Positions 3,195 through 55,593 of a stretch of DNA of 64,000 nt are shown in pieces. Position numbers and translations under genes: made by a program. Source of the stretch: Stylophora pistillata (lineage: Eukaryota); assembly GCF_002571385.2 (NCBI RefSeq), contig NW_019218560.1, positions 31,257 through 95,256 on the forward strand, written 5' to 3'. Every line of letters begins with the position of its first letter. Position 1 is the first letter of the stretch. Below the pieces are notes generated by a model, which was not told where the DNA came from, did no database searches, and saw only the letters and a list, made by a program, of their open reading frames with translations.

Positions 3195-3299
3195 CTTTGA
3201 TCATCAAAACACTTGTCTCCCACAATCCATTGCAAAGTAAACAAAACAAAACAAAGAAACCATAGTACTTTGCAGTTTTTACGTGTTTCTAAATCCAAC
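3195..3299. promoter_or_regulatory. Very short bidirectional promoter region, METTL1/YIPF3
   Basis: Divergent ATGs at 3194 (-) and 3300 (+); both sit in YY1-like contexts (AAGATGGCGG, AACATGGCG); locally CpG-rich. Confidence 0.75.
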
Positions 3300-35400: not shown

Positions 35401-35863
35401 TGTGGGCTAAGTGAGTGTGGACATTAGTTGATATGGCAACACCACCATACTCAACACAATTTAAATTGGACCGTCTTGACTTGAAACAAGACAAACCCAT
35501 TATTTTCTGTATTATTTAGTTGGATAAAAGACTCTAGAATGATGTAACACTGTTTGAAATTTTCAATTCATCCACTTTCAAGATGTCTTCCTTACCATGT
35601 AGCCAATAAGTAAACAAGTGAACACCACATGATCAGAAAAAGTTCCATCGTGTTCTGGAATCCTGGCCAAGTTATCAACAAGGAGAAGGTAAAAGAAATA
35701 CAAGAATCCAAGTAAGTGGGACCAGATGTTGATGGACTCATTCGACATTACAAAGAGACTAGAAAATGAAGAGAAATTTCAAAGGTCAGTGTTATTTTAT
35801 GACTACAGAATTTAAACCCTCTTTCACCATAACATCAATATGCAAGTTCTCTATAATTTTCTC

Positions 35864-35899
<36 letters not shown>

Positions 35900-37598
35900 C
35901 TTTATTAATGTGTCAAATCAATAGCAGTTTCCCACTAAATAAGGACAACTAAACTAAACTAATCTAATATACATAAAATGCATAAAATATGCAATCCTGC
36001 CCTGTATAGTTGACCCTATATATATATGTACTACCCTACCCTATGTAATTAAAATTACCTAAAAGATTAGAAATACAATACTGATAATATAAAATATTAA
36101 GATTAATATTTTATATTATCATTACTAATCCATTCTCTATGGTGCTTGCAAGGAGAATTTGTCTGACAATCAAGAGTTTCTTGAGTTTGCAATCATTTCC
36201 TTTATTCTCATAACCCTGAGGTTTGATTCAGGGGTGACACTATTGTGAGAATTTAGATGCCTATCAATCTTTTGGGTGAAAGGGTGAAAGTAAGTAGAGC
36301 CAGGGCTCAACACTAACGGTAACCAACTAGCCACAGACTAGTAGAAATTCAGATTTGGCTAGTGGTTTTCAATTTCCACTAGCCAGTTTGGCTAGTAAAC
36401 AAACTGAAATTGTTTTAACATCTAGGTTGTCACTGGCCACTTGGCTAGTAAGTTGAAAAGTTAGTGTCCAGCCCTGAAGAGCTGTTACTGACCTAGTCCC
36501 ACTTTGAGATTGTATGAAATTACAAGGAGTATAGTTTTAATAACTGCATCTTCAGGCTGCTCATTTGTAGGAAACTAGTCTAGCCAATGCAGGTGATCCC
36601 TGATCATTTTATACTCCCCCTAGAGTAAGACACCATTAACACAACACAATGGCACTCACCAGGGTTGTTCCCTGGACCTTGAAATCCAGCGTCAAGCATG
36701 CTTACATTGAGCCACAAGAAAGGGAGAACAAACGCCAACCATGATGGAGGCCCCCCCTCTCCCAGAAAAAAAGGATAATAATATATTGTCACACATTAAT
36801 AATCATTTTAGGCTGCTCGAGGTTGTTGCATTTGAGCAGCTCAGACTGGAATCAATTCTTAAATGACGCGTCTTTGTTTTGTTTTTCTCATTAATAGAAG
36901 AAATTAAAACTTTTGTGAGTCCTAAGGTTTAATGATTGGGGGAAAGAAAAGTAAGAAACAAGGTTAATCTTTTTTTTTTTTTATGAATATTCTGGTCACC
37001 TCTGATTGAACACTTGTTCTAGTATGTATGCTGTCAAAAAATAACCCCCACCAGCAACAAAAGCAGCCACACCTAAGGGAAAAAAGTCCATCGCCCTTAC
37101 CCCCCTTCAGAAAAGAAACCAGATGGCCAAAAGGAAAAGGAAAGTAAGTTTAAAGTTGAGAAGAAAAGACCAGTGATGTTAAATATGCCTTTATTCTCTC
37201 TAGTAATATATTAATGGCTCAATTTGTGATTCAAACCCCTCTATTCCTCCTAAGTCCAAAGAGGAACACCTCAACTGCCGTTTCTTTCATTCAACAGCTT
37301 TTCAGTTTTAAGTACCGGAGTTTCAAACACTAACGCAACTTAATAGAAGAGTCAGGTACTTTAACGAAAAATCACTAGGAAAGCAGTTGAATCAGATTAC
37401 TTACCTTTTGACGCACATTCTGAACGATAAGAAGGCCCGGTAACCAGACGTAACGTAAGGATTTCCTCTTAGGAAGTACGGGACATCGTGGTAGTCGTAC
37501 AATTTTACAACCTTCGAGTCCAGAAGGAAAGGACTTTCCAAATCTTTCTCAAACCCTCTCTCGTTTAAGTCCATTTGAATGCTTGAGAGATCAGCCAT
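32417..37598 (-). CDS. PAQR3: Progestin and adipoQ receptor family member 3; exons 37405-37598, 35596-35758, 35138-35290, 34304-34501, 33730-33820, 32417-32595
   Basis: NPYVTSGYR, SNESINIWSHLLG, SAIYHLFCCHSE, DLAGIS, KIPERYFPGKLNYVGSSHQWWH are PAQR/HlyIII motifs and closest to PAQR3; phases are consistent. Confidence 0.95.
36301..36476. mobile_element. ~175-bp MITE with CAGGGCT..ACACTAAC TIRs; inverted second copy at 60749-60934
   Basis: TIRs are visible; internal (A)CTAGCCA/TGGCTAGT subrepeats; the two copies are highly similar. Confidence 0.8.
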
Positions 37599-38101
37599 CT
37601 TCAATGTTCTCGATGTCCGATTCTCATTTGTAGTGTGTCACTGTAGAGTGCAACCAACATCAGATCAGATCTTAATGTCAATGTCAAAGAGTCCTTAGTT
37701 ACTTGCAGCTTTCTGGAGAGTGTTTCATTTGTCACGCGTCCTTGTCTTGGAGTTCAGATGCCTTTAGTTGTACTTCCTGTCGACGTGACCAGGATCTGAA
37801 GGGGTGTTCCGGCGAAATTCCTTCACATTTATTCACAGTACGCGGAAATAAGATTACTGTCACTATCGATGTTTGCCGGATCTGTTTACCGGCGTAGTCA
37901 TCGCTGTTTGCGTGTTTCTCCCGTGACTATTATCGATCGTGCCTTTACCCAAATTTGGTCAAGATCTCCAAATATAGATTAGAACTGAGCGGAAATGAGA
38001 TGGAATACTCAATCAATCGGAAGCCAGTCAACAAATGTTAATAGGAGGTGATACAGAGTGTTGGTTGCAAATCGTGCGCTTCCCTTATTTTAGGATAAAG
38101 C

Positions 38102-41100
38102 ATGTCTTCGGCTCGAGAAGCGTACTTGAGAGATTTACCTCATCCGAATTTAAATGACGTTCTTAAATCCAATACTTACAGCGCCATCAAACTCCTCAAA
38201 ACAGGTAAACGCAAAGACATGAGCCTTCATGTGGATACTCTACACCCAATATTTGCCTGACTTGTTTTCCTTATATGTGCGTTTCGTTATGACATTTTGA
38301 GCATATCCTTACACTAATTAAATCCTAAATGTCACGTTATCAAGTTTGTTCAGGGAATGAATTGAGTCACAACGATGAAACTCTGGTATTGATTTTCATA
38401 AATTATTATAGAAAATTCATGCAAAAATTCCTATCAAATTTATACATGTAAATATCGATCGCGTTATTTTGTTATTGTATAAGACATTTTAAATATAGTA
38501 ATTTTGCATTCATTATTCATGTATTTCCTCAATTCTATGCCAAAATTAACCACATTTTAATTGATTCACCGGTGAGTTGCTGGTTAAATGGTACTCTTGC
38601 TCTGTGGAGACCTGAAAGGTTTTTAATATCCTACAGTTTTCAGGTTGATATACTTTTTGAATACCTCAACCTATATCAGACATTGTTTGAAGTGTTCAAT
38701 ACCACGGTGGTTGCCTTCCCAGGAGAACTCTGTTATTAATTACATAATTTCAAATAATGTATTAAATCCTAAACGTAACCATTTACGTAAAGACGCCCAA
38801 TACTATTCCAAAACAAAGGTAATCTTTTGTTTTGCCATAATGATTGTACTTTTTATCTAGACTGTATGCATGATTAATTCTGGCGTTATACGGAAATCTT
38901 GCCAGTTTGATTTATAACCAAAAGATTTAATGCAGTGAAATTAAATTGTGGGCACAGTTTAGGGTTAGTCATAATAACACTCTGTTACTGCCAACAAAAT
39001 CTCGTCAAAATTTTCAAAATTTCTTTTTTTTCTGTTCGTTAGTTATAGAGAATTAAATAATCTAAGTTTAATTTATTGATGAAAATAATAAAAAATCTCA
39101 AAAAGAATGCGAGATACAGCTGAAAGAGTTTTTTAGGGTAGCTAGTACTACATAGTGAAAGGTGTAGTAATCTGGAAGTTTCCAGTAGAGTGTTGATATT
39201 TTTTGTGGATTTTCATCTAAGTTCTTGATTTGCATATTTCCTTTACATAGCATATTGCACCACACAAAAGAAGTGAATTTGTCACATTTCCACTTTTATT
39301 TCATGAGTCAATATGAAGGATTGTTAAATATTGTTAATTTTTCAACTTTCTTTTCTCAGTTGGTGAATTTTCCCACAAGGTGGCTTCTCTTAAAGAACAA
39401 TTGGGAAACCAACTCCTTTCATTGGTGGAATCATTCAGAAAGAAGAACTTAGAAATGAAGAAAGACAGGTCTGTATTTAATAAGAATCATTGTCATGACA
39501 TTGTCATATATCTTGCTCAAGCAAGATATATGACAAGATATAAGTATCAGTCAAATGTTTCTTTCTGTTGTTTATCGTTGATTTTCATAAGTTAAGGACT
39601 GTATTAGCAAAAGTATCAGAAGAAGCCTAAAGTTTACCAGAACTTTCAAAATAAAACTGACAACATTTCAAGGTGACAGTGGTGAGTAACCATATCATAG
39701 ATTAGAGAGACTCCCCTCTAAACAGTGCTTGCATGATGCAGACCTGCAGCTAAGTGTACATGCATGCATGCAGTACTTTTTGCATGCATGCAGTTAGTCA
39801 CTGCATGCATGCAGTTAGTCTCTGCATGCATGCAGTTAGTTTTAGCATAGATGCAAAAAGTGTCTGCGCGCATGCAACCTGGAGCTCCATGCTTGTATGA
39901 ATAGATGACTGTATTTCCAGACTGCATGGTTTGAAGTTTGAGCAAACGGTAAGTTCTTTTATTCAGTTTACACTCTAAGTAAGATAATCTATTGTTCATG
40001 CTTATTATATTGTAATCCACTTTGATACTCAGAACATAATTTTACATGTGACCTTGCATGCAGTTGCTGATATCTTTTTTCAAATTATAATTTCTCTCAG
40101 ATCTGCTTTAAGTAGTGCTTTTAGCTGCTGGGAAACACTGCTTGGGGAATATGAAAAACAAGCACAGGTATTGTTATTATTCTTTTATGAAATAAGTCAT
40201 GAATTTTGTAGAAAAGATATATACATGAACCAGCTGACACTAGGAAGTCTACTGTTAGTAACCTACAAATTGATTAAAATGAATACCAGTCATATTGATA
40301 GTTTTTTTGATACATACATTTTTGCAGTTCTTAATTCACTATTTGATGTATTAATTTGTAAAAGTAATTAAGTGTCCTCTGGAAAATTCTCCAAATGACT
40401 TTCCTGTAATAGTTACAGCAGGAAACAGCTGAGTTGTATGGTCAAAACTTTGTGGTGCACACATGTATAAATCAAAGGTGAAAATTACCAGATAGCTGTG
40501 GTCGTAACCTAAAGAGACTTGCAAATTACCAGACATGTCTTCCATTTCTTAGGATATGTTAAAGGTTTCATCCAGTCTAGTGCGACAGGTGAATACTCCA
40601 GCTTTTGAGGAGGTGATCAAGAAGAAAGCAGCCACAAAAAAGGTGTGATGACTATGTTACTTTACTGCATGGGTCAGCAGGATCAGATATCAGATATCAG
40701 ATATCAGATATCAGATATCAGTGCTCATGGAGAGAGCAGTCTCACCACCCTCCCAAGGAAGCTTTTCAAATGAAAAGTTTTAATTAATTAAGGAATACTT
40801 TATTTATAATTAATGGTGGTTAATAATGTTATCCTTATTATTTTAAAGATATTTTCCTTCAGAGACAGTGGTGAAAGTCAGATTGAAAAGGCAGATGAAG
40901 CATTACAAAAGGTGATAAAAATGAAAATAAATTTTAAAAAGTGTGCACTTATATCTACGTACCTCTCATCTAATTTTGTGTGAGCAAATGTGAATTACCT
41001 CCATATTCATTCGATATTTTGCAAATTCTGTAATGTAGTTAGACCTTCCTGTATCATTAACTAGGAAGTAAAAAGTAGATTTGCAAGTTTTTACAGTTTT

Positions 41101-44100
41101 CTATTAAGAGAATGAGTTTCATTTTGCCATCTACAAGGTTAGTTGAATTTAAAGCTGACTCATGTAGTAGACCTCAAATGACATCAAAATGTGTTAAGTT
41201 CACTTTTGAAACACTGAGGTTGGTAGGGTATTGATGTTCTTCTTGTTGATGTCACTGTGATCTACTACAATGGAAGATTCAATAAAAATCCACAAATCTC
41301 TTGCTTAAGTAGACCACAATAAAATCCTCAACTTTTTTCTCTACTCAGCGCCACAAAGAATATTCAGAAGCTTGTGCCAAACTTGCAAAATTGCAAAGTG
41401 CAGGTGCAGAAGCTGCCAAGGTATTACTAAGCTTTACCTTTTAGCTAGAGTGTTGCATCAAACTTTCTTTTTGCTTGGTATTGCATGCATATAGTGTCCA
41501 ATTACTGTTAGCTACCCTTTTGACTCCCAAAAGTGACTGCAAATCTAGTTTCCCCTTCAATATTACCCCTGAATCACGCATGAGAATAAAGGAAATGATT
41601 ATCAACTAGAGGTTGAAGCTCTTGATTGTGAAACAAAGTCTCCTTATCTGCGGGCCTTAGGAATTCAATATAGAGAACAGTATGAAGAATATGGAGACTG
41701 ATGAGAAGGAGTAAAGGGTTAGAGAAAGTCTGACTTTCTTTCTTGGTAGCATGAATTGACAAGGAGTAAGGCTTCTCCTTTGGGATTAGATTCCATTCCC
41801 ACTCCTTGGCAACTTCCCCACAGAAATTTACCAAGTCTACCTGAAAGCTAAATGAATGTGCACTGTGGGGAAACAGGCCCCATTGAGGGTAAAATCTTGC
41901 CCCAAATACAATAAAATTGTAAACATTATTGAAGAACAGTTTGGTAAAACTGACACATGGAAAGATCCTTAATTTCACAAGAACTCTGTATCACTATGTC
42001 TTAGATTGAACTATTAGTAAAACTCAGGACTCACAGCAGTACATGTTTCTGTTTCTAAAGATTTGTACATTGTACAGGTGGAAGAACAAAAGGACACATA
42101 GTTCCCTACTAGGTTCATCCACCTAAACCCAACCCACCCCTCCCACCCCGGGAAAGGACATCCATCACACAGTAATCTCGTGCGTGGGAAATTAACGTCT
42201 CCTACCCCTCCTGCAGGATACAGGACCTCCATTTATTCGTCCCTATCTGAGAAGACTAGAATATCTAACCATTTCTTGATGTTATAGAAAGGAAGCGTAT
42301 TCTTCTCAATTATTTTAAGACCATGAGTGTTGGTCCGGCTGGGGCTCGAACTCTCGACCTCCCTCACAACAGTCCAGCGCTCTATCCATTGAGCTAACTG
42401 GGAGGCATGATTCAATTGACTCACTTAATTGTGACTGGTGACCTTTGTTCCAAGAGAGATCGACTGACTAAATTAAAATGTGGTAGAATTTTCTAAAATG
42501 AGTCCAAGGCTTGAAATTTTGAGCTTCTACCTGGCTTTCAGTCAAAAGAGATGAGTAAAAGAAAAAGGCAACAAACAGCAGTGGTGATTTTCAGAGAAAT
42601 GGCTGGGTAACCTAGTCATCTTAATTTGGAGATCAGTCTGCTAACAGTAGACCCACTCATAATGGCTTTTACCCCCTGTCCTTTTTTCATTTAGAGAGTA
42701 GTTTATTTTTGTTATCCTTAAACTTAGAAAGTTTCTGACACTTTTTGTCAATTTGTAGCAAGAACATGTTCAGACATTGTGCCATAATACCCACAATGCC
42801 TATGTACTTCAGCTTAATTGTGTCAACAACATGAATGGAGTGTTCTATTCTACAACACTTCCTCAAATGCTGGATGTAAGTATTGATACAGTGTGAATGA
42901 AAGAATACCAAACTATTTTTAATTAAAGGTAGTAAGTTGTAATTTACCTTGAAAAAGTGAATACCAGGAAAATAGGGAATCCCAGCTATAGCGATGACAA
43001 TGAACATTTGTGCTCAGATTTTTCTACAGGAAAGGGGAAACCCTATCTTTGCCTCACGCCCAGTGTGTGGCTTCAGTAGTCACTAGTCCCCCTTTCATTC
43101 TCTCATTTACTCACTTAGTAAGTCAATTACTCAGTCACTTAGTTAACATACTCATTACTTAATTGGTTAAATGAAATTCCCTTAGTTGAAGTAAGTTAGT
43201 CAGTCAGTGAGGCATCTCATTAGTTATCAGTTTGTCAGTCTGTAAGTCAGGCAGGCAGGCAGCCAGTCAGTCAGTCCGTCATTCATTTATTCACTCATTC
43301 ATTCATTCATTCAGCCAGTCAGTCAGTCAATCAGACAGACTATAAGCCATTTAGTGAGTCAGTCATTTATACAGTCTGTCTGTCTCAAGTTTGCTCTAGT
43401 TGGTCTTTTTGTTTGATGGTTTGATCTGTCAGTCAATATTTTACAAGGTGGGTTGGTGTCTTTAGTCAAGTATTGAGTTGTCAATTAAATTACTAATGCT
43501 GTTCATGTATCATTTAATCTCTCTTTTGCTGATCAACATAATGATAGTTCTAAGTTGTCTAAATTATGTGAGTACCTGTTTTTGAATCAGTTTCATTTTC
43601 TGGCTCTACTCTCCATAGGACTTACAAGATATACATCAAGATGTTTCAGAATCTTTGAGAGTGGCTTTTGGTGACTGTTCAAAGATTGAGAAAGAAAATG
43701 TAATTTTAACCTGTTTTTGTTGTCATATTCATAACTGTTGTCCTCTTCAATCAGCATATGATGGATGAGTTTATTTAATTTCTCCTTGTATTATAACCAA
43801 TGACCTAGTTTAAACTAATTTTACCAGCATAGAACAGTAGAGTTCACTGTTATTTATATCATTCATTCCTTGTCCCTCTCTCACCCTCCTGCTTATAACG
43901 CACAATCAGTTTGAAGCTTCAACACCCCCCCCCCCCCATTGCCACCTGGAACTCCTTGGGAATGAACAATTGCTTGTGTGATATCAACGAATGTTGTACG
44001 AGTTAGCATAGCTATGTCTTAGATTTTGTTGCTATTGTTGGGCTTTTTTGCTCAGGTAGGCATCTGATCCTCATTGAGAAATTGTCTTTCTAAGCCATTT

Positions 44101-44272
44101 GCTCACAAGACTACTTTGATGCCCTAGTCTACCAAAGCAACTGAAGGTTCAAAAATAATAAAGGCTGATAGTTTCGAAAGAAACTGTTTGGGGCTGTGTC
44201 AGTGGGAGTAATGAAATAATTTGGATATATCAACAAAGTTGAAATGGTAAATTGGCCACCATAACGATTACA

Positions 44273-44303
<31 letters not shown>

Positions 44304-47300
44304 TGGAGTGAATAGAGGAATTGTGGGTTGTGTGTACTTTCAAAGGCAGAAAATGGAGCTACGTTATTAGTGGGAACATGGCAACGAGAAAAACAAGAAT
44401 AAGTTAGTGGAATGAAAAGCGTTCGTTGATCCCTGTGGGATTTAGANNNNNNNNNNNNNNNNNNNNNNNNNNNNNNNNNNNNNNNNNNNNNNNNNNNNNN
44501 NNNNNNNNNNNNNNNNNNNNNNNNNNNNNNNNNNNNNNNNNNNNNNNNNNNNNNNNNNNNNNNNNNNNNNNNNNNNNNNNNNNNNNNNNNNNNNNNNNNN
44601 NNNNNNNNNNNNNNNNNNNNNNNNNNNNNNNNNNNNNNNNNNNNNNNNNNNNNNNNNNNNNNNNNNNNNNNNNNNNNNNNNNNNNNNNNNNNNNNNNNNN
44701 NNNNNNNNNNNNNNNNNNNNNNNNNNNNNNNNNNNNNNNNNNNNNNNNNNNNNNNNNNNNNNNNNNNNNNNNNNNNNNNNNNNNNNNNNNNNNNNNNNNN
44801 NNNNNNNNNNNNNNNNNNNNNNNNNNNNNNNNNNNNNNNNNNNNNNNNNNNNNNNNNNNNNNNNNNNNNNNNNNNNNNNNNNNNNNNNNNNNNNNNNNNN
44901 NNNNNNNNNNNNNNNNNNNNNNNNNNNNNNNNNNNNNNNNNNNNNNNNNNNNNNNNNNNNNNNNNNNNNNNNNNNNNNNNNNNNNNNNNNNNNNNNNNNN
45001 NNNNNNNNNNNNNNNNNNNNNNNNNNNNNNNNNNNNNNNNNNNNNNNNNNNNNNNNNNNNNNNNNNNNNNNNNNNNNNNNNNNNNNNNNNNNNNNNNNNN
45101 NNNNNNNNNNNNNNNAATCAAATATTGTGGAAAGTGCAAAGCGGAAAGCAGTGATGTAGAGTAGAACTGAGATCAAAGTTTCTTTTTTGATTTATTCCTT
45201 TGCCAGATAGTCGATAGCGTCAAGAGATTGGAAAGCATAGAAAGTATGTTTCAGCTCATGAACAGCAAGGCAGACATCTCAACATTTGTCCAGGCAAATG
45301 ATCCTGGTGCTTACTCTTCACCAGAGAAAAATTTCCAGAAACCAGAAGATAATCATCTATTAGTAAGTCCACACCAAGTTACGAAAGAGTCAACACTGAA
45401 CTATTAGTTTTGAGTCTTAGACCGCTGGTTAGTTCCCCTTCCTTTCAGCTGGCTTACATAACTGTTTAACTGGCCTACATTTCTGTTTGACAGGCTTGTT
45501 ACTTTGTACAAATTGAAGCGATTAAATCATCGTCACTTTGATCGTAGGAAACAGACTTGGATAGTAATGTTTCGGAATTGTTCTACAGTTATAGAATTAA
45601 ATAAATATATAGAAAACATAGAATTGAATAAATATTTCTTAAATGTATATAAACTGTATAAATATATAGAGTTATATGGCTAATATATTATTCTAAATTA
45701 ATTTATAGTATTGTTGAATTATAAACGTCAGTCTCTTGAGCATTTTAGAAAATTTACTGTATTCTGGACAAGTGAATTTTAACCGTGTATAAATAGATAA
45801 GGCAAAAGATTGAAGATTACTAACGTAAAACGCCTTAAACTTAAAGCTAAGTTTTCTCCATTTTATTTTATTTTCTTCTTTCTCTAACATTAATTATTCT
45901 ACACGAAGTTCTGATTTCGATCCAGCGCGTACTCTTGTAAAACGTAGGGATAACCACGTGATCAACCATCAATCACCAAACAAACTTTATTTATCAAAAT
46001 TTCCTAACTTATTTCTAATACAAATATAGAATACCGTAACTTACAACTTGTGGCATTACTAAAAAACTTCTTGATTATACATCCCAATTATGTAATTGGT
46101 CCCCCTAATATGGTGACAGATTAACGCACGAAACCAGATTCAATATCAAAATTTAGCGAAAGAATGATATTCTTTTGAATTAAGCTATAGGTAGGGTTGT
46201 GTCCAAATCCTCTAACCGTCTTTAATTCTTCTTACAGAATGTAACAGACAAAAGACTTTTTTTGGTGAATGCAACGGAACCCGTGCTGAAGAGGAAATAT
46301 ATCGCACTCCAAATAAAGGTACAGTTGTTTGTTTACATGATATGCAGTATTGACCAACGGTTAGGTCATTTAAGAGAGCCGGATATTAGGAAAGTATTAT
46401 TTCTTTTTGCGGATTTATAGACCATCCCCTTGTTCTTTGTCCAAGAAACACGTTAAAATGACGACGCTAACATTTAGCCGTCACAATTTGACGGATCAAT
46501 TTTGTCCAAAAATATTTCACATTTGTGAGATAGGAACGGGTAAATCTGAGGGACGGAGATGGACCCGCTAGCTCGGGTAGCCAATCAGAGCACAGAGTTC
46601 GCTTCCTTTTGCCTGGTTGTAAGTGCCATCCATTTGATAAGGTTTATAATTTTTAACCATTTTTAGGGAATATGGTTTTTTGTTTTGGGGTACAGTATAA
46701 CTATTTCTTCAGGGAAAAGGCGCTTTTTCGTCCTTGGTTTTTTTTAAAGGGGAGACTCAATAAGAAATGTGACGTAAGCTCGCACATCATCTGAGGAAAG
46801 AAATACTCGTTTGAAGGTTGTATCCGTGGAGGACAGTAGTTACTGAAGTGAGGGTGCTCCCTACCGAAGTTGAAACATTGACTTTTTAATTGTTAGAGTC
46901 AGCTTACTGTTACTCTTTGAAAAAATAATCATTTTCGTTCTATTGAACCCGTTTTTTCGGGTCGAGGAGGTTCGACATGACGTGTCTCCTCTCAGTGGAG
47001 CGCCGTCCAGGTTTGATCGATTAGATATTTTAGAGTTCGGTAAGCCTAGGCACGATTAAAAATTTAAACCATCTAATCTTCAATTTTCGTTCTCTAGTTG
47101 CGAAACTATGATACAGCGATAAAGAAGGATCAGGAGACCGTGAAATCTATGAAAAAATTACGTGAAAGGTAACAGAAGTTTTAGGTTTACTTTGGCAAAC
47201 TCATAGCACATTTCCGAATTACCTTTAGCCTCATTTTTAAAGTGAGTCCAAGGGCTTATCCTTTGATATGATAATAAGTTTTCATTCACATGCAAATTAA

Positions 47301-50300
47301 ACTCATTTTCATACGAATGATTGACCACCAGGCCTCGTTTAGAAAAGGAGGCCAAAGGTAATTGAGAAGTAGCCTATTAAAATGTCCTCCTGTGCCCCTG
47401 AATATGTCCCTGAATGGTGACATTTTTTATGCGACCAGGGAAGTTTGGTAGCAGCGAAGTTTACCAATGGTCTCGAATTCTTGCTCTTGATCTAGTTCAG
47501 ACATATCGGGCGGAGTACCCACTCTGCTTTAATTGGCCGCAGTGCTTACGTTAGCTTTATATTTTGTGGCAAGAAACAAGACATGCCGAGCCTGAAAACA
47601 TTGGAGGAACTCACTCGCGTTCAGTAAACTTGTTTGTTTGTTTGTTTGTTTGATTTCTCCCGGCACTTGAAAACAAAGTATTCTTCATTTGTTTTTTGTT
47701 TGTTTGTTTCCAAACTTGATAAACAGCTACTCACAAAATCCATCCTACGGAAATGCAGGAGAACTTGAGGAGGATCTATTAAGGCAAAAAAATGAGCTAA
47801 GGGTGAAGGAATGGCTCTCCTGTGTTGCTAAGGAACAGGTAGGCCTGTCAATGATAGGTCCGCAATAGCATACTTATAAGAAAAACGAAAAACATTAATA
47901 TGTTATATAAATCTGTTGAAAGAAAACTTAAGCAGGGAAGCGAAAACTCGAGACTTTTCCAACACCAAGATTATCTTATTACGGGTTATCGGCTGATTAA
48001 CCATTTTGTTTTTAGCTTTACCAAAAAATTCATACACAGTTTTCAAGCACCGCGACTTACTCGTTTGTTTTAGAAGACAACTTGTTGCCTGGAAGCACGC
48101 TATCTAGCCTTTTCAACGTTTGCACATGCGCAGACTTTGTCCGCTGTGTTAGTTACGAGATTGGTGAGAGTTTTCCAGACCAAACCAAGACAATCTCGGA
48201 TCACTCTCAATATTCACTGGAAAATTGATTCATTGTTTGTGAATTGATATGGGTACCTCGTTTTTCTTCTTCGCAGACTAAACTCTTCACATCAGACGTA
48301 CTTGACAAACTTCAAGTTACCGAAGATGATCTCCAAGATGACGAGGAACCCAATAGCGAGGACGAGAGTGTCACAAGACCAGTGGATAAGCGGCAGAGTG
48401 TGATCAGCTCCAAAGGAAAAAAGATAAGAAAAGCTGGACAGCATCAGTTTGAGGATCACACTTTCAAGAAACCGAAGTTCTGTTTTTACTGCAAGGGACT
48501 TATAAAGGGTAATAAAACCTACTCAAATTTTCCCTTTGTGTCGAATGAACTGGAGGAGACTTCGTTAGGTTCATGGAAAGTACGTAAGACTCGATATCGG
48601 TAGAGGCGTGAGTTTGTGTTGTCGCCGAGGTCACTGTGCTGTGTTCTTGGGCAAGATTCTTAACTCACACAGTGTATTATCTATGAATGGGGAACGCGAA
48701 ACTGTCAGCTCTGGCGAACGTTAAAAAGCAATTCTACGGCGCTATCAGCTTTGAACTTGCATGAATTATGTAAAGAGAGGGTCAGTAAGGTCGGGAGCCC
48801 ATTACTTGGAGCGTTCAACTGCCCTTTGTTTATGTCAAAGGTGTTTTTACAGACATGTCTATTTTTACTGCGAAATGGGATTCCCCACGGAAGCCCTGCG
48901 ACCAATCACGATTAGCACGTAGTTAATTTATAACTATTTCCCGGGAAAAGGTAGTCTAAAAATAAACCGTTCTGTGAAAATGCCGTGACTGACATAGGCT
49001 CAGTATGGGAGTTGAACGCTCCAAGTAATGGGTTCCTGGTGATGTCCATGTTCTTTGGTTGCATCTTGCCAAGAATTGTGAACCTGTCGAGGTTAAATGA
49101 ACATGTACAGTAGAAAAATAGAGAACGGGCCTGTTAAGACATCACTTCGATTGGTATTGGAGGTGCGGTTGAGTTAACGGAACCTTTGTTCCTTTACCAT
49201 CGCAATACTTCCTTGATGGAGAGTTGTCTTTTTGTTGCTAGGATTAATTAAGCAGGGTGCGCGATGTAAAGTTTGCAAGATGAGTGTCCACCACAAGTGT
49301 CGCGACAACGTGCCTTACTGTCCTGGCGACAGGGTGAGTGTCATGTTTGTGTATTTAATAAATATTTTTTTTTTTTATCTAGGGACAGCCCAACCATCTC
49401 TCATTGCCTTATTAGTATTCCGAAAGTAAGGAGTATATAGATGGAGCGTGGACCACAATGGTTCTTTCGTAAAAGGAATTCTTTTATCCCCGTTACTCAG
49501 CGCGAGAGTTTTATACTTTTGATTTTTTTTTTTTTTGCGGGTGAAAAGGTACCAATGTTTGACAACCGATTTCGTGTTGACTCGTATTGCTTTTAACTTC
49601 TGTCAGTCATTTGAGGCTTGACTAGAAATCGTTTCCTAAACTCATTAAACTCACGAGCTTGTGCCATAAATCAAAGAGGAAAAAACTTGGTCTGTTACTT
49701 TCTGCGCGGGCGTCGAACTTGAAAAAGTGATGAGGGTGTCTGTAACGGGCCCTGTTTTTCTTTAGCTCGCGTTGTTCCGCCTTTAAAAAGAGGGAAAAGA
49801 GCATTTCATTAGTGGAAGGGAACGGCACACAGAATTTTTTTTTTTTTTCATGTGTTGACCTAATGAGGAAGGGGGTAGGGAGCTGTGAACGATGATTAAC
49901 GGTAACTCTATTTTTTTTTTCGCTTTTTGTATCTGTTGCAGTCTACCAAAGGACAGTCGCTACGCATTTCATGCACTAATCAACAGGAAGATGACTCTGA
50001 TGATCCTGTGTACAGTGACGTGGATGACGTCCCCACCCCTCCCCCGCACAAGAGAGCATTGGGTCCGACCACATCATTACCTGTTTACAGGGGAAACGAC
50101 TTCTATGGTACGGAATGTATAGGTTAACAAGATTTCCGTCAGTGCGTAATTGTTGCGTGACCTAGAGTTACATTAAAGATTTGTATGATTATTTTTTGTT
50201 TCCTATGAAGGTGAATTCTCAGAGAAAAAGTTATCGAACTTTTTTTTTAAAACTTTCCCTAAATGTTCCCAACCATTGTCTGTTTCGAAAAATGCAATCA

Positions 50301-53300
50301 GCAAGATAGGTCACCATGCTTGTTTAAGAGATATGATGAGCCAAACTTAACACATTTATGCCTGTACTGGCGCTAATCACGCGCGTCATCNTCTCATCAG
50401 TTCACAATATATTTTGAAGTTGCAGGAAGCAACGGTTTTTGAAGAAACTTCATTCTAAGTAGGTAGAACTTCTCGAGCGTATGGAACAAATCGATATATA
50501 ATTTGTGGGAAAAATCACGCAATTTTTAAACGACATCGACCCAAAACTTTCCTGGAGTCGTTGCTTTCAAGGTAATGATTTTCATCATCGACTAACGGGC
50601 TTTGTGCACGATTTTAGCTGTATCTTTCTCCCATCGATTCTTTTTTTTTTTTTTTTTTCAATTTCTCCAATTTAAAGGGGATAATTTGGTCACCAAAATT
50701 ATGCAATAAAAAATATAGATCCTCTTGCTCGTCCAAGGGCTAAAGACTATCTCGGAATAAACACGCTTATTCGCCGAGTGCGTGATTTTTAAGCGCAGTA
50801 CAGGATGTGCAGTGCAACACTGAGGAATCACCTTAATTGAAGCCACGATCGAAGTAGCCTGCGGTGCAAGCGTCATTGGGGCGAGTCAGTCTAGGGTAAC
50901 CAGTTATCGCCTTTTGGGTCTTAAGAGTAAGTCGTTACCAGACTCTGATTTTCTTTGCCCCCTGCTCAGCGATAACAGGATCCCCAGGAGGCATTAGTTA
51001 TAGTTGGTATGCGCGTCTAAATGTGTGAGATTTGGTGGTCCAGGGGTTAGTGTTACTGTGCCTCACCGAAGTAGTCTCGGTTGTTTAGGGCAAAAATTCA
51101 GTAATTTTGCCTATAAAATCCTCTTCAAGGTTGTAGGCGGAAGTAAATTAATTCTTCATTATTTGAATTACGCTCTTCCGCAAAATTTTCAGCTTTCTGA
51201 TAATGGAATTTTCTCGAATTCTTGTCTTCAGATGACGTTGAGGGAATGATTTCTTCATCGAGATCGGTATGGTTATTGTTTCTGTTTGGCTCACAACAAA
51301 TTGGTGTTGTTTTATTGAACAAGATGTGATTGTAAGTTTGTTAGGAGCTCAGGCATTCTCTCACGGCAAGGTGATGAAAAATTTGTCGTTTCCAATTTCT
51401 TTACTTAGCTTTTTAAATGTTATTTTTAGAAGTGCTGTGTTTCTCTTTACGATTTTAACGGGGAGAATGATGGAGATCTAAAATTAAGGTGAGAACCTTT
51501 TCTTCCTTTCTTTGGTGCGGATTTAGTAGGCGCTTGGTAGTGAGCGATGCTATTGTTCTACTCAAAACACCATGCAGGGGAGCATTAGTACGTCATCAAA
51601 ATCCAAAGCAACGCAACCCAATTTGAAATGTATTTATTTGGATGTCTCTTCCTCAGTAATATTTTTTTTTACTAGCATATGATCGTTTATTGGGTATGGT
51701 CTCCGCACAGTATCCTATGTGAAGCTGTACCCTCTCGCCGAAAGAAACGTTTCTCCTCGGGGGGGGGAGGGGGGGAAGGGTGCGGCTGCACGTAGACTGC
51801 CGCCCAGCCTCTCACTTCATTTAGCGTACAGTTCTTGGTTAAAGACAACAATGACAAAATAGTAGATTGCCCTCGGAAAAACGGATTTGTCTTGCAATAG
51901 TATAGCGCTGTGCGGAAATCTTCCTCCTATTGGAAAGACGTCAACCTAAAAGGAGCATGCATTTTTATTTATTTCACTGATCCGTGGAAGCAAAGCACGG
52001 AAGTTTAACCAACTTACCGTTGCAACGACAATTTACTTTGTGTGATAAAATTTTGTCGCCTCAACAAGTCGCCTAAATGCAAACTGGTTTCAAATTTTGG
52101 CCGACTTGTGATTTGTGTTTTCGCATGTGTTTTGGACATTCGTAGAAGAATATGGTTCAAATGCCTCCTAAAATCCTCTTCGGGAAAGAAGAACCTAAAA
52201 AAAATTGCCTCACTCCCGACCCAACGTGTGGCTTCGTTGCTCAGTTGGTAACAGTGCCCCCTAGTATCTGGGAAGTCAAAGCATGGATTTTTTTTGCTTC
52301 TTTTCTGCAAACGCTAAAAATTGCAGTCCACCGGTCCATTTGTTTGCTTGAATATGGTTCTACTATGAATTCACATCTCGTTTCCTTGTTATAGTGCCGG
52401 GGATAAGGTTCAAGTCTTAAACAGTGCTGATGAAAACTGGTGGGAAGTAAGTGATGACAGTTCACGGTTCTCGATTGCGTAACTTCTAAACACGGAAAGT
52501 TTTGAAACACTCAGTGGACTGGAATTTTAACTGCCGTTTGAATATGATATGTAGCTTGCACGGCTGGTGACTGGGAGATAAGAAAGAAGACGGAAACGCA
52601 AAAATCAGCTACAAAGGTCCGAAGGTCGTCCTTGTAAAAATATTCTGGAAGATGGTAATTTTTTAAAGTCGTTGAGGAAATAAAGGTGTTATTCCTTTTC
52701 TCTTGTGCGTGGGAGAAAGAAAAACGCGGAGACCCCCACGACGAATCGAATTTTGGTGCGTCAGTTGGCGAACAAGCGTGATTTTGTGGCGTTCGCCCTT
52801 CGCGCTTTCAAAGGTTTCGCTTTCTCTACTTTGAAAAACGTAGAAAAGATTACGCCTGTTTTGCCTTATTTAAAAAGGCGAAACCGAGGAAAAATGCGGT
52901 CAGAGTCGTCGGGAAATCTGTAAAGCATGAACCATGAGCTGCTTCCTCTTGATGCCTTAAACTGTTGTGTAGCTAAACTTTTTTTGTTGTTGTCATTGTT
53001 ACTCAGGGCACAAGTAAAGGAAAAACAGGGTTCTTCCCTGCTTCTTACGTACAGGTATGATTAAGCTTTTACACCCTTACACCAATATGCCTATTCTCCA
53101 TACTGTTCTCTATACATTTCCTAAGAAACTGAAAAGAGAATTTGTTTAACAATCAAGGCATTCTTTCGTTGGTGATCATTTCCTTTCTTCTTTTGACCTT
53201 CATGTGTGATTCAGGGGTGATGTAAGAAGAAATTTATTCCATGGGCGTGCGTTGTTTATGAGATGGTGTGTAACTAACGAGGCGGGTGGCGCTAAGTTGG

Positions 53301-55593
53301 CTTGAACCATTCTCTTATCCAACAAGTGCGAGTGGAATAATTGTTTTATTAAATTTCATTAAATCCTGAACGTTTGACTACTTCAGCAAACATTTTCAGC
53401 TTCCAACACGCCGCAGGTAAGGCGACTCGGAAGATGAACCGGAACCAATCAGAATACTAGAAATACAATATTTGATTTAAGTCACAATTACCCAGAGGCG
53501 TCCCAAGCTCACATCTCGAGCAAAAGCGAAGGATTAGTTCGTGAAATTGTCACACGTTGTGTGACGCGGTGTTAGTTACGCGAGCAACCGTTGAGAATTT
53601 GAATGCGTTATAAGGAATAGTAAGAGGAACAAAATATGGTTCATTTAAAACACTAAATATTCCGAAATATGAACATTTTACACCTTAGATTAATAAAACT
53701 TACTCGTTACTTGTGTGTCCGTTATGTTTTTTGGCGATTTCTGCTGTTTTGCACTTGCTTTGCCATCACTGAGGGTCCCCCTCCATCACTGTTTTTCCAG
53801 GAAAAACAGGAAATATTTTGAAATGTTTTATTTTTAAGATGAGGACATGATTGTATTTTGTTTTAAGAGCTACCTTGTTGTCTCGATCAGATGCCCCGGT
53901 GTATTGATAAGGCCGACGTTTAGTCTCATCTCTCATCAACTTTTGTCTTTTCTAATCTTTACAGCTGTTATGTGTGCAGAGAGTATTCGTTTTGACTGCC
54001 CAATCTTCGAGCCACTACTTTTTAAATTTTGAGTGTTTTATTTCTAAAATAAGAGCGTATTTTTGTGTTTCTTCTCAATAGCTACCTTGTTTTCTCGATT
54101 AAACGCCCTCGACGTATTTCCAAGGCTGACGTGCAATCCATTTCTCATCAATCTTTGTTTACTAGTCGTCTTTGCAGCTGTCATCTGTCCTACTTTTCGC
54201 GTAAATTTGTTTCGCAATCTCTATATAGTAATTTTTTTTACTTGCGCAATACCCAACTTTAACGCCTAACGGTTTGTTGCTTCGCTTTGACTTCATTGCA
54301 GGTGATTTCTGCCACTGACGTCATTCTTCGATGCCTGTTTGATTTCACTGGTCAAGAAGGAGATGAGTTGACAATTCAGGCTAATCAGGTCAGCGGTGAT
54401 ATATTTTGTTTGTTTGTTTTTGGCATGCACTTGTCAATCGAGATGAACAAGCGTATGGAGGCTACGGTTAAAGTCGATGGTATCTGAAGAAGAGCGCACT
54501 TACCCCCCTCCCCTCCTCCCCTAACCCAACAAAAGTGAACTCATAACAAGTAGTTAGGGTTAGTATTGGGTTAGGGGAGGGGTGGGGGCACACTTGCTCG
54601 GCTACTGACGTTTATCCGGGGTCACGTAGCACGATTTTTTTTTTTACCTTTTCACTCCCAAGATCTTATTTCTAATTCTCCTTACTGTCTGCTATATAAT
54701 TCTTATGGTGTTAGTTTGAAGAATTTGGTATTGGATCAATCAATAATCCCCTCATTGATATTGAACAATTATTCGCCGAAGACGAGGTTAATATCGTCGA
54801 ATAATCCCCGAGACGGTTATTCGACAATATTCACCGAACCTGAGGCGAATAATTGTTTTAGTATAATTTCAGAGCTGAACAACAGAGGAATTTCTAAAAT
54901 CATAACATTTTGGTAACATTTATTAACATTTTATTTTAACATTTTATATAAACCGCGTGGCGCTCGACCAATCAGATTGCTGGAAACTCTCATCTCTGAA
55001 ATTATACTAATTTTCTTTATTCTCATAACTTGTCTACTTGATATTGTATTCATACGGAAAGGAGAAATTCTGTCTTGATCACTCATGAGAGTTAAAAGGT
55101 TAGGTATGTGTCTATAGGACCTCGTACACAGTTCCAGGAATCTATATTCTACTGGGAAATTTAGTGATCACCCTAATCATGGCTTAGTTTATTTCTTTGA
55201 CTAAAAGACTTGTCTTTAAGATTTCAAAATGAGCGAACAGTGACCCCTTTTCTCGTTCTTCACAATTCAGAAAGAACCGTCTCGCGACAGAAACGAACCC
55301 CTTAGCTAAAAAACGAACAAGACTTCTTGTACTCAACGAAAATACTTGGTTTAAGCAAGACGCAAAGCTGTTTTAGGACTTTTCAGAAGGTGGCAGTCGG
55401 TGTGTTGTTCGTTTGTAATTTCAGGTAACCCAAGCTGGACTTTTTTTTCTGATTACATTATTTTCCTTTTACACAGATAGTCGTTCAGATCAGAGACGAA
55501 GGCAACGGATGGATCGTTGGAAGAACGGGCTCGGTAGAAGGGGCCTTTCCAGCGACCTATGTTGAAAAAGTCACTAATAATGGTCCTGATTAG
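38102..55593 (+). CDS. F-BAR + HR1-like coiled coil + C1 + tandem SH3 adaptor (STAC-like C-terminus, Bzz1-like architecture), about 669 aa; exons 38102-38204, 39360-39468, 40101-40167, 40553-40642, 40849-40911, 41349-41420, 42759-42875, 43619-43699, 45207-45362, 46238-46318, 47098-47168, 47727-47838, 48277-48508, 49242-49333, 49942-50107, 51232-51266, 51430-51488, 52395-52446, 53007-53054, 54302-54388, 55477-55593
   Basis: 21 GT-AG exons join in one frame (2010 nt). F-BAR helix motif [31 protein letters not shown]; YSQNPSYGN; C1 [36 protein letters not shown]; SH3-1 [23 protein letters not shown]; SH3-2 [23 protein letters not shown]. Confidence 0.88.
39760..39845. repeat. 21-bp minisatellite built on TGCATGCATGCAGTTAGT
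   Basis: 3-4 tandem units with a palindromic TGCATGCA core. Confidence 0.85.
40682..40721. repeat. (ATCAGAT)n heptamer microsatellite
   Basis: About 5.5 perfect units. Confidence 0.9.
42050..42406 (-). mobile_element. tRNA-derived SINE
   Basis: Minus strand: gcctcccagttagctcaatggatagagcg (A box)...gagttcgagcccc (B box), then a non-tRNA body; no acceptor-stem closure. Confidence 0.75.
43195..43385. repeat. Compound (CAGT)n/(CAGG)n/(CATT)n microsatellite
   Basis: Directly visible in the sequence. Confidence 0.85.
44150..44446 (-). mobile_element. 3' end of a Penelope-like retroelement running into the assembly gap
   Basis: Minus strand encodes ...[13 protein letters not shown], typical of a GIY-YIG PLE ORF end, followed by a pLTR with a hammerhead-like acgaagggctaacgctcaaaacgtcagc; matches 59955-60105. 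Confidence 0.75.
48796..49036. mobile_element. ~240-bp MITE with ~27-bp TIRs
   Basis: ggagcccattacttggagcgttcaact...agttgaacgctccaagtaatgggttcc. Confidence 0.7.
53822..54190. repeat. Diverged ~210-bp tandem duplication in an intron
   Basis: agctaccttgtt..tctcgat...tctcatcaa...cagctgt occurs twice (about 53868 and about 54080). Confidence 0.7.
54762..55010. mobile_element. Palindromic-head repeat (aattattcgcc...ggcgaataatt) nested in a TTAA-type element; decayed relative at about 13205-13510
   Basis: Inverted repeat at 54765-54855; interrupts the host element that spans 54645-55100. Confidence 0.65.

Follow-up and report, generated by a model that had tools for sequence, protein, structure and literature searches.

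Gene structure and expression

Within the window, that is, the whole 64,000-nucleotide stretch of Stylophora pistillata DNA analyzed, 21 exons on the forward strand between positions 38102 and 55593 were spliced into one 2010-nt frame that encodes 669 residues and has a single terminal stop. The splice model was built by mapping a coral ortholog (P0006, 667 residues) by tblastn and then seeking the best in-frame splice sites; P0006 mapped collinearly onto the window, and all 20 introns had GT-AG borders. The start ATG is located at 38102, with an in-frame stop one codon upstream, and the last base of the stop codon is 55593. The spliced translation was 100% identical, residue for residue, to the public S. 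pistillata protein P0069, and the S. pistillata genome contains one copy of the gene. RefSeq names P0069 "protein BZZ1-like", and the genome's own annotation names it "SH3 and cysteine-rich domain-containing protein".

An initial annotation of the DNA letters had described 21 exons in one frame of about 669 residues; we recovered the same count and length, and every motif that it had quoted is present in the spliced protein. In particular, YSQNPSYGN was found at residue 338, HTFKKPKFC at residue 435 (exon 13) and DPVY at residue 503 (exon 15); further motifs were located at residues 594 ([10 protein letters not shown]), 610 (ILRCLFDF) and 630 (NQIV). The features, all on the forward strand except the strandless gap, are given below with their evidence in parentheses; exons 3 to 8 were each placed by P0006 mapping, splice sites and frame.

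38102-38204, +, exon 1, residues 1-35, start codon, F-BAR begins (tblastn with P0006, GT donor, identity to P0069)
39360-39468, +, exon 2, residues 35-71, F-BAR helix 1 (P0006 mapping, splice sites, frame; Pfam FCH region, residues 19-96)
40101-40167, +, exon 3, residues 71-93, F-BAR
40553-40642, +, exon 4, residues 94-123, F-BAR helix 2
40849-40911, +, exon 5, residues 124-144, F-BAR helix 2
41349-41420, +, exon 6, residues 145-168, F-BAR
42759-42875, +, exon 7, residues 169-207, F-BAR helix 3
43619-43699, +, exon 8, residues 208-234, F-BAR helix 3, the exon preceding the gap
44447-45115, no strand, assembly gap (N run) inside intron 8 (43700-45206)
45207-45362, +, exon 9, residues 235-286, F-BAR end, disordered stretch begins (P0006 mapping, splice sites, AF2)
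46238-46318, +, exon 10, residues 287-313, HR1 helix 1 begins (P0006 mapping, splice sites; 3' end equals the RNA loose end before 47096, runs X14 and X24)
47098-47168, +, exon 11, residues 314-337, HR1 helix 1 (RNA joint 47168/47727 in all four runs)
47727-47838, +, exon 12, residues 337-374, HR1 with turn YSQNPSYGN, then helix 2 (RNA joints at either end; Pfam HR1_TOCA, residues 305-361)
48277-48508, +, exon 13, residues 375-452, acidic linker and first half of C1 with HTFKKPKFC (RNA joints 47838/48277 and 48508/49242; Pfam C1_1 positions 1-22)
49242-49333, +, exon 14, residues 452-482, second half of C1 (RNA joints; Pfam C1_1 positions 22-49)
49942-50107, +, exon 15, residues 483-538, linker with DPVY at 50002-50013 (RNA joints 49333/49942 and 50107/51232; U-domain residues per PMC6156082)
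51232-51266, +, exon 16, residues 538-549, 35-nt micro-exon (RNA joints 50107/51232 and 51266/51430, four runs)
51430-51488, +, exon 17, residues 550-569, SH3-1 begins (RNA joints; P0006 mapping, splice sites)
52395-52446, +, exon 18, residues 569-586, SH3-1 with WW motif (RNA joints; Pfam SH3_1)
53007-53054, +, exon 19, residues 587-602, SH3-1 end with [10 protein letters not shown] (RNA joint 52446/53007; exon 20 sequence follows in the loose end behind 53056)
54302-54388, +, exon 20, residues 603-631, six-residue connector, SH3-2 begins with ILRCLFDF (P0006 mapping, splice sites, RNA loose end, Pfam)
55477-55593, +, exon 21, residues 632-669 and TAG stop, SH3-2 end (P0006 mapping, frame; Pfam SH3_9)

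In four RNA runs, reads and contigs confirmed 10 of the 20 junctions, among them 47838/48277, where the F-BAR/HR1 half meets the C1 half. Eight joints and two loose ends in these runs agreed with the model, and exons 11 through 19 were linked; the 35-nt exon 16, which restores the frame, was detected by RNA joints only. The first RNA mates lay on the reverse strand, which in most stranded libraries indicates forward-strand RNA. The coral STAC-like gene is expressed from the forward strand.

Structure of the N-terminal half

The N-terminal half was composed of an F-BAR domain (approximately residues 16-265) and a TOCA-type HR1 hairpin (approximately residues 299-377), followed by an acidic linker that leads to the C1 domain. 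Pfam FCH scored 27.1 bits on P0069, just below its cut-off of 27.8, and HR1_TOCA scored 27.4 bits, barely above its cut-off of 27. The best solved match to the N-terminal profile was the CIP4 F-BAR domain (2efk), with an E-value of 1.2e-6 over positions 21-271. The AF2 model contained three long helices at residues 16-250 and a helical hairpin at residues 299-376, and for this half Foldseek returned CIP4 (TMt 0.72) and FBP17 and Hof1 (both 0.71). The initial annotation's reading of this half was supported: profiles and model point to a CIP4/TOCA-type F-BAR with a TOCA-type HR1, itself a marginal match, behind it.

The F-BAR region was predicted to form a symmetric homodimer with a score of 0.79, compared with 0.00 for the best of three controls; the runs agreed in 86% or more of their contacts, with a partner pLDDT of 84 or higher. 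Of 30 proteins solved as one-chain pairs, 21 reached the mark for a dimer; of 23 solved as single chains, none did. Among eukaryotic proteins 17 of 29 attained it, but just one of the seven that had no older solved relative did so, and the result may reflect memory of solved F-BAR dimers. The net charge of the F-BAR region was not positive (33 K+R versus 33 D+E, pI 7.2), and its amphioxus counterpart was acidic. The basic residues that we take to mediate membrane contact in FBP17 had no position-for-position match in the HMM alignment to CIP4.

Structure of the C-terminal half

The C-terminal half contained a C1 domain (residues 430-479), an acidic linker with DPVY and a back-to-back SH3 pair (residues 550-665); Pfam identified C1_1 at 54.8 bits and two SH3 domains on P0069. 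The C1 domain was modelled by AF2 at low confidence, and with a half-C1 profile the STAC3 C1 domain ranked before all other C1 matches. The two SH3 domains, which are joined by six residues, aligned with those of STAC1, STAC2 and STAC3 in a single stretch (E-values of 1e-17 to 1e-20). Upon superposition on the STAC1-3 crystal structures, the TMt was 0.87-0.93 and the rmsd 1.3-2.1 Å, whereas other tandem SH3 proteins reached a TMt of only 0.26-0.43. Judged by alignment and modelled geometry, the coral SH3 pair is a STAC-type rigid tandem. A search with the C-terminal half returned amphioxus STAC-like proteins first and vertebrate STACs next, these being its nearest non-cnidarian relatives, in line with the STAC-like C-terminus that had been noticed initially.

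The STAC U-motif blocks channel inactivation. The linker motif DPVY, singled out initially, corresponds to the core of the U-domain in STAC2 (residues given in PMC6156082). Of the nine STAC2-critical residues (KVD, PVY and ETL), the coral protein keeps only D-PVY, which is invariant in corals, and it had no match to Pfam STAC2_u1.

Relationship to STAC proteins

An HMM of the cnidarian N-terminal half matched the amphioxus N-termini over its full length with an E-value of about 1e-77, and the amphioxus STAC-like proteins matched the coral protein over both halves. The fused form therefore predates the cnidarian-bilaterian split and the vertebrates. On sequence grounds, the coral protein is orthologous to the amphioxus STAC-like proteins over both halves, and vertebrate STACs are without the N-terminal module. 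In the Atlas feature search, arthropod C1+SH3 clusters were nearest (0.96 and 0.93); from the amphioxus proteins and these leads we infer orthology with Drosophila Dstac. A putative BAR domain in Dstac and other invertebrate STACs is described in PMC7573238, which cites Hsu et al. 2018. This agrees with the BAR-like region mentioned for Dstac in the initial annotation, extends it to other invertebrate STACs and removes most of the novelty of the coral layout.

Identity and proposed function of the protein

We consider it likely that the locus encodes an expressed, 669-residue invertebrate-type STAC ortholog of S. pistillata with a putative role at the membrane and CaV1. It might be argued instead that two genes, or a scaffold mis-join at the 44.4-45.1 kb gap, lie behind a fused protein that is an artefact of gene prediction, and a gap of estimated length does sit within the gene, and shortened public models exist (P0003, 396 residues; P0063, 499 residues; P0028, 411 residues). 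However, the gap falls within an intron, and that intron interrupts the F-BAR coding region instead of separating the two halves. No coding residue is missing over it, exons 8 and 9 each begin in phase 0, and orthologs cross their join without insertion or deletion. Exons 1-11 comprise 1010 coding nt, and RNA contigs carried 1058-1062 nt 5' of exon 12, which supports this join indirectly; contigs X6-6 and X14-2, judged by length, begin some 50 nt before the ATG and reach exon 15 or beyond. Additionally, P0076 and P0077, predicted from Logan sequencing-run assemblies, are 669-residue proteins with one or two differing residues on contigs of about 3.1 kb, far below the 17.5-kb gene, which indicates one mRNA. 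Full-length proteins of 664-669 residues were found on Logan contigs of 2.2-3.3 kb, too short for introns; their 76-89% identity to the S. pistillata protein suggests that several coral species are represented. With the RNA joints that tie exons 11 through 19 together and the presence of both halves in amphioxus, these results contradict separation or mis-joining, which we regard as extremely improbable.

A second alternative is that the protein is functionally a Bzz1/TOCA-type endocytic adaptor, in which the F-BAR senses curvature, HR1 and the SH3 domains recruit a Cdc42-like GTPase, WASP and dynamin for actin polymerization, the STAC likeness reflects shared ancestry only, and CaV1 regulation is a later bilaterian gain. 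Its domain order equals that of fungal Bzz1-type ArF-BAR (PMC8158962), and RefSeq labels P0069 and its Pocillopora damicornis and Nematostella orthologs BZZ1 or BZZ1-like. CIP4/TOCA proteins are closest for F-BAR and HR1, the U-motif is conserved only in part, and the Atlas gave, as leads only, a Basidiomycota C1+SH3 cluster (0.90) and a "putative Protein BZZ1" cluster (0.88). Structures of Bzz1 SH3 domains exist in the PDB, yet none was present among the 60 best PDB matches, where several other yeast SH3 domains appeared; by this ranking the coral SH3 domains show no marked resemblance to Bzz1. Both the sequence and the predicted rigid geometry of the tandem SH3 point specifically to STAC, the STAC3 C1 outranks every other C1, DPVY is invariant in corals, and the sequence searches, limited by word matching and length, returned no fungal protein. 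BAR-bearing Dstac does regulate CaV1 (PMC7573238). We consider the endocytic adaptor unlikely.

For the favored STAC ortholog, the F-BAR dimer, aided by the basic C1 and HR1, would place the protein at curved or PI(4,5)P2-rich plasma membrane. By analogy with STAC and Dstac, the C1 domain, DPVY linker and tandem SH3 would bind coral CaV1, support its surface expression and damp its calcium-dependent inactivation, and HR1 may receive input from a Cdc42-like GTPase. By pure inference, curvature or actin might be coupled to CaV1 in coral cells. Weighing against this STAC-type reading are the partly lost U-motif, the lack of net positive charge on the F-BAR region, the borderline FCH and HR1 scores, the low-confidence C1 model and a dimer prediction that may echo solved F-BAR dimers. 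Of the initial reading, the single gene with F-BAR, HR1, C1 and two SH3 domains, its STAC-like C-terminus, the DPVY motif and the BAR-like region of Dstac were supported, whereas an origin from fungal Bzz1-type proteins, or any special relationship to them, is hypothetical, as is the coupling to CaV1.

Comparison with known systems

The TOCA family (CIP4, FBP17 and TOCA-1) and NOSTRIN share the F-BAR and subsequent HR1 with the coral protein, CIP4 being the best solved sequence match, but they end in a single SH3 domain and have no C1, whereas in the coral protein HR1 is followed by C1 and a STAC-type SH3 pair. Fungal Bzz1/ArF-BAR has its domains in the same order, with an unusual C1 domain likewise placed after the F-BAR and before the two SH3 domains (PMC8158962). 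In contrast to the six-residue coral connector, the ArF-BAR SH3 domains (572-651 and 705-760) are separated by a linker of about 50 residues (PMC8158962); likeness to Bzz1 was judged from PDB rankings.

Vertebrate STACs share the C1 domain (57-60% identity for P0045 and P0052, 45% for P0057) with its FKKPxFC signature, the tandem SH3 (32-34% identity to STAC1, STAC2 and STAC3 in a single-stretch alignment), the U-domain DPVY, and the WW motif with the equivalent of STAC2 W329. However, STAC1, STAC2 and STAC3 have neither F-BAR nor HR1 and no similarity to the coral N-terminus, and the coral protein lacks the Pfam STAC2_u1 linker domain and does not conserve ETL and KV of the U-motif.

Public databases already list the gene, and its layout has been reported earlier for invertebrate STACs, which, like Dstac, share a BAR-type domain N-terminal to the C1 and SH3 module. 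The amphioxus proteins, one of which is named STAC by its source, are of this kind and match the coral protein in both halves, but they are 811-877 residues long with long disordered inserts, whereas the coral protein is compact at 669 residues. Where PMC7573238 speaks only of a putative BAR domain for invertebrate STACs, the coral domain was resolved as an F-BAR followed by a TOCA-type HR1.

Gene model and assembly gap

The window was AT-rich animal DNA, the RNA and DNA runs that contain it carry a coral label, and the motifs quoted in the initial annotation were all found on the + strand, inside short stop-free segments. A search of the first exon of the C1 domain against 1.84 billion representative proteins identified P0006, a coral ortholog of 667 aa with 78% identity, plus shorter fragments. 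Alignment of P0006 with the window by tblastn revealed 20 collinear pieces that covered residues 1-667 except 532-549. All GT/GC donors and AG acceptors near every pair of tblastn pieces were tried with a splice-site script, and for 18 of the 19 joins of neighbouring pieces, one in-frame GT-AG junction, with a polypyrimidine tract, stood out clearly as the best; the piece that tblastn had missed was a 35-nt exon, which was revealed through RNA joints. The 21 exons total 2010 nt and encode 669 aa with a single terminal stop, so that this splice model reproduced the exon count and the length proposed in the initial annotation. The features of the gene are as follows.

38102-55593, + strand: the 21-exon gene, with its ATG at 38102 and an in-frame stop one codon upstream
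43700-45206, + strand: intron 8, which contains a run of N at 44447-45115
48316-48510, + strand: interval used as the first-C1-exon query in the protein search
51232-51266, + strand: the 35-nt exon missed by tblastn

Exons 8 and 9 each start in phase 0, and residues 234 and 235 follow one another directly in every ortholog, without any indel; therefore, the gap in intron 8 conceals no coding sequence and the frame is unbroken. The gap falls within the F-BAR coding region rather than at the boundary between the protein halves. Other ambiguous positions were a single N at 50391 (intron 15) and a separate run of 19 N at 23030-23048, outside the gene. Tandem repeats were present in intron 2 (39761-39876, 21/42-nt unit, about 4 copies), at the intronic position 40682-40721 (7-nt unit, 5.7 copies), in intron 7 (43190-43338, an AGTC-like run of 37 copies) and in intron 9 (45449-45497, 21-nt unit, 2.3 copies).

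Public identity and copy number

The spliced translation was 100% identical to the Stylophora pistillata protein P0069 (XP_022807749.1, PFX14458.1), which is named "protein BZZ1-like" in RefSeq and "SH3 and cysteine-rich domain-containing protein" in the genome's own annotation. The databases thus already contain this exact gene model, and its names there reflect both comparisons drawn in the initial annotation. Two 669-aa proteins predicted from Logan sequencing-run assemblies differed from P0069 by 1-2 residues, and "protein BZZ1" is the name given to the Nematostella ortholog of 683 aa. A search of the 397.6-Mb, 5513-contig S. pistillata assembly showed that the gene is single-copy and gave no second STAC-like gene, the remaining matches being generic SH3 domains with 24-50% identity. 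Porites lobata has a second model, P0028 (411 aa), on the same 5.48-Mb contig as its full-length ortholog P0027. P0028 begins within the distal F-BAR/HR1 region, contains C1 and one clear SH3, and diverges within the second SH3. Its identity is 62-69%, and it may represent a partial duplicate close by or a paralog.

Transcript evidence

RNA was examined over 47090-53089 in two polyA contig sets and two raw stranded runs. All eight junctions predicted within this interval, from exons 11/12 to exons 18/19, were observed as GT..AG joints, seven of them in all four RNA runs, while the exon 18/19 joint was clean in three runs and SNP-shifted in run X14. In the latter, a TA..GC joint at 52447/53010 that could be taken for an odd splice was found to be the normal exon 18/19 junction together with a synonymous C-to-T change at 53009. 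At the exon 10/11 and 19/20 junctions, the RNA gave loose ends with sequence that continued into the adjoining exon. First mates lay on the - strand, as + strand RNA would give in most stranded libraries.

The initial annotation had raised the concern that the 5' and 3' halves were separate genes or a scaffold mis-join at the gap. The gap is intronic, as described, and two single RNA contigs extend far to the 5' side of exon 12, by 1058 nt in X6-6 (1662 nt in all) and by 1062 nt in X14-2 (1813 nt in all). Since exons 1-11 comprise 1010 nt of coding sequence, these contigs begin some 50 nt 5' of the ATG and extend across the C1 and linker exons. Furthermore, full-length orthologs of 664-669 aa were found on Logan contigs of 2.2-3.3 kb, which must represent spliced mRNA because the gene covers 17.5 kb; judged by their 76-89% identity to the window protein, these orthologs appear to come from other coral species. 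The intronic gap, the RNA joints, the long RNA contigs and the short Logan contigs with full-length proteins together led us to reject the two-gene or mis-join reading.

Several additional features were noted in the RNA. Exons in 47760-53009 showed single-base differences between RNA and assembly (for example at 47796, 48353, 48431 and 50067), which are probably allelic or population variants. In intron 11, the summed RNA contig depth was 1275-3196 over 47090-47489, compared with 20-60 on exons, and in each of the four runs, loose ends at about 47260-47315 continued into unlike sequence; this deep stretch looks like a short repeat or mobile-element fragment found in many transcripts. Short pieces with loose ends on both sides occurred in several RNA runs in introns 13 and 15 (48799-48829, 48991 and 50795-50826). 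Their first mates were mostly on the + strand, opposite to the reads of the gene, and these pieces could derive from repeats or from antisense transcripts. Finally, X6 contigs covered long intronic stretches of introns 15-17 (50078-52336) at a depth of 10-20, compared with 63 for the spliced contig, which indicates retained introns, pre-mRNA or DNA carry-over in the library.

Neighbouring loci

Two loci lie on the 5' side of the gene.

34232-37604, - strand: PAQR/haemolysin-III family gene in head-to-head orientation to the STAC-like gene
31106-32311, + strand: an open frame of 401 aa, acidic and serine-rich

Two exons of the PAQR gene matched Pfam HlyIII (E 9e-8 and 1.2e-11). About 500 bp separate the end of its apparent first coding exon from the ATG of the STAC-like gene, a spacing that suggests a shared bidirectional promoter region. 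The 401-aa open frame had no match in Pfam and may represent one large exon of a further gene that lies upstream of the PAQR gene.

Structure of the N-terminal half

Pfam was run exon by exon on the unspliced single exons, and P0069 was used for the whole-protein analysis. The FCH match in P0069 scored 27.1 bits, slightly below the 27.8 cut-off. A profile built from two cnidarian N-terminal fragments had the CIP4 F-BAR/EFC structure 2efk as its best solved match (E 1.2e-6, positions 21-271) and matched none of the solved HR1 structures. The AlphaFold2 model of P0026, a relative with 94% identity, contained long helices at residues 16-68, 75-162 and 166-250, followed by a disordered stretch, and Foldseek comparison of this model with CIP4, FBP17 and Hof1 gave TMt values of 0.71-0.72, with weaker matches to the F-BARs of FCHO2, GAS7, Fes, srGAP2 and PACSIN. 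The profile and the model thus bore out the F-BAR N-terminus read in the initial annotation, and the N-terminal half is predicted to adopt an elongated three-helix F-BAR/EFC fold.

When two copies of aa 1-300 were modelled, a symmetric dimer was predicted with a score of 0.79, whereas the best of three controls scored 0.00; the contacts agreed to at least 86% and the pLDDT was at least 84. Of 30 proteins solved as pairs of one chain, 21 passed the mark used for such dimers, and of 23 solved as single chains, 0 did so. Among eukaryotic proteins 17 of 29 passed it, yet only 1 of the 7 without an older solved relative, and the result for the coral domain may therefore reflect the predictor's memory of solved F-BAR dimers. 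A symmetric antiparallel homodimer is the predicted state of the F-BAR. The domain is net neutral (33 K+R versus 33 D+E), and the basic residues of CIP4 helix 1 had no position-for-position match in the HMM alignment; for this reason, membrane binding is a property that we infer.

The region after the F-BAR gave a marginal HR1_TOCA match in P0069 (aa 305-361, 27.4 bits against a cut-off of 27), and the exon carrying YSQNPSYGN gave, on its own, a faint match to TOCA-type HR1. In the model of P0026, residues 299-340 and 347-376 formed a helical hairpin with YSQNPSYGN at the turn, in agreement with the HR1 region placed there by the initial annotation. HR1_TOCA scored 22.9 bits in the Nematostella ortholog and had no Pfam match in the amphioxus proteins.

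Structure of the C-terminal half

In P0069, Pfam revealed C1_1 at aa 430-478 (54.8 bits) and two SH3 stretches from aa 555, and the single-exon matches agreed. The C1 domain is divided between two exons (profile positions 1-22 and 22-49), and each SH3 is also divided over exons. The FKKPxFC signature of the C1 is common to amphioxus and vertebrate STAC, and its identity to the amphioxus and vertebrate STAC C1 domains was 57-63%, apart from 45% in one of the four comparisons. The segment G-x-x-K-Q-G of DAG-responsive C1 domains was intact, but a lysine occupied the site where PKC C1 domains carry tryptophan.

The SH3 pair aligned continuously with the STAC1, STAC2 and STAC3 structures (6b25, 6b26 and 6uy7; E 1e-17 to 1e-20). 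Upon superposition of the predicted pair from P0026 on the STAC1/2/3 crystal structures, Foldseek gave TMt values of 0.87-0.93 and an rmsd of 1.3-2.1 Å over about 115 residues, whereas other tandem SH3 proteins (sorbin, p47phox and GRB2) gave 0.26-0.43. The two SH3 domains, joined by a connector of six residues (aa 604-609), are thus predicted to lie back to back in the rigid STAC1/2/3 arrangement, and the C1 and SH3 results agree with the STAC-like C-terminal half described in the initial annotation. The first SH3 contains a WW motif at aa 584-585, nearly invariant in the family alignment, which contains the equivalent of STAC2 W329 and STAC3 W284, a residue whose role has been described (PMC8258685). 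This tryptophan is weakly diagnostic of STAC because most SH3 domains carry it.

The linker retains the STAC U-motif in part. DPVY is the centre of the STAC2 U-domain, and D-PVY (aa 502-506) was invariant in three coral sequences, but the KV and ETL of the STAC2 motif KVD-PVY-ETL were not kept. Pfam STAC2_u1 had no match in the coral or amphioxus proteins, compared with 120 bits in an axolotl STAC. In STAC2, KVD, PVY and ETL are each required for suppressing CaV1 inactivation (PMC6156082).

Relationship to STAC and Bzz1 proteins

A search with the C-terminal half gave, after corals, STAC-like proteins of amphioxus (E 1e-42 to 1e-33), followed by vertebrate STACs (E 1e-28); by this search ranking, STAC proteins appear to be the nearest relatives beyond the phylum. 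The amphioxus proteins are 811-877 aa long; one bears the name STAC in its source, and FCH is present in several. An HMM of cnidarian N-termini matched the N-termini of these amphioxus proteins over their full length (E about 1e-77) and gave no match to vertebrate STACs. The match in amphioxus means that the fused architecture is common to Cnidaria and a chordate and therefore older than vertebrates. A profile of 16 cnidarian and amphioxus sequences found almost only cnidarian proteins, plus two weak single-SH3 matches, and the N-terminal single-sequence search found cnidarians only. The gene is a coral member of the BAR-containing invertebrate STAC family, and our analysis resolves its BAR as a CIP4-like F-BAR with an HR1-like hairpin after it. 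The BAR-STAC layout was published by Hsu et al. 2018, as cited in PMC7573238; in the text of a STAC structural review (PMC8258685), neither 'BAR domain' nor 'invertebrate' occurs. Our literature search found no paper that combined Bzz1, STAC and F-BAR and none on a cnidarian STAC.

A deeper kinship is a tentative and, in our estimate, rather doubtful proposal: animal STACs and fungal Bzz1 would descend from one opisthokont protein with F-BAR, HR1, C1, SH3 and SH3, related to the TOCA family; the coral protein would still join the ancestral curvature/actin module to the CaV1-regulating module, and vertebrates would have kept only the latter. The domain order F-BAR, C1, SH3, SH3 is the same in the fungal Bzz1-type protein ArF-BAR (PMC8158962), but the SH3 domains of the latter are spaced by a linker (572-651 and 705-760), whereas those of the coral protein lie back to back. 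The RefSeq name is also consistent with such kinship, and Atlas feature scores of 0.88-0.90 point the same way as leads only. In contrast, no fungal protein was among the matches listed for the C1-exon, N-terminal, C-terminal and 16-sequence profile searches, and Bzz1 SH3 domains were absent among the best PDB matches listed. Were common descent true, STAC-dependent calcium-channel control would have begun inside an endocytic membrane-shaping machine.

Proposed mechanism and comparison with known systems

The initial annotation was correct in every detail of observation and its structural interpretation held; the mechanism proposed here draws on knowledge of the family. In this mechanism, the protein would be placed at the membrane by its F-BAR dimer together with the basic C1 and HR1, the C1, DPVY linker and tandem SH3 would bind and modulate CaV1, and the protein may receive GTPase input. 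L-type channels in neurons are tuned by STAC1, STAC2 and Dstac, the Drosophila STAC.

The gain is modest because the gene was already annotated and the BAR-STAC layout already published. The F-BAR of the coral protein is clear, its C1 near-canonical and its DPVY core conserved, and it also has an HR1-like hairpin. This compact single-copy cnidarian version offers a simple setting in which to study the function of the N-terminal module, the candidate roles being membrane targeting, GTPase input or an actin link. The gene also lets one ask whether STAC regulation of CaV1 predates bilaterians. Compared with the TOCA family (CIP4/FBP17/TOCA-1), whose members have a single C-terminal SH3 and no C1, the coral protein carries a C1 and two SH3 domains.
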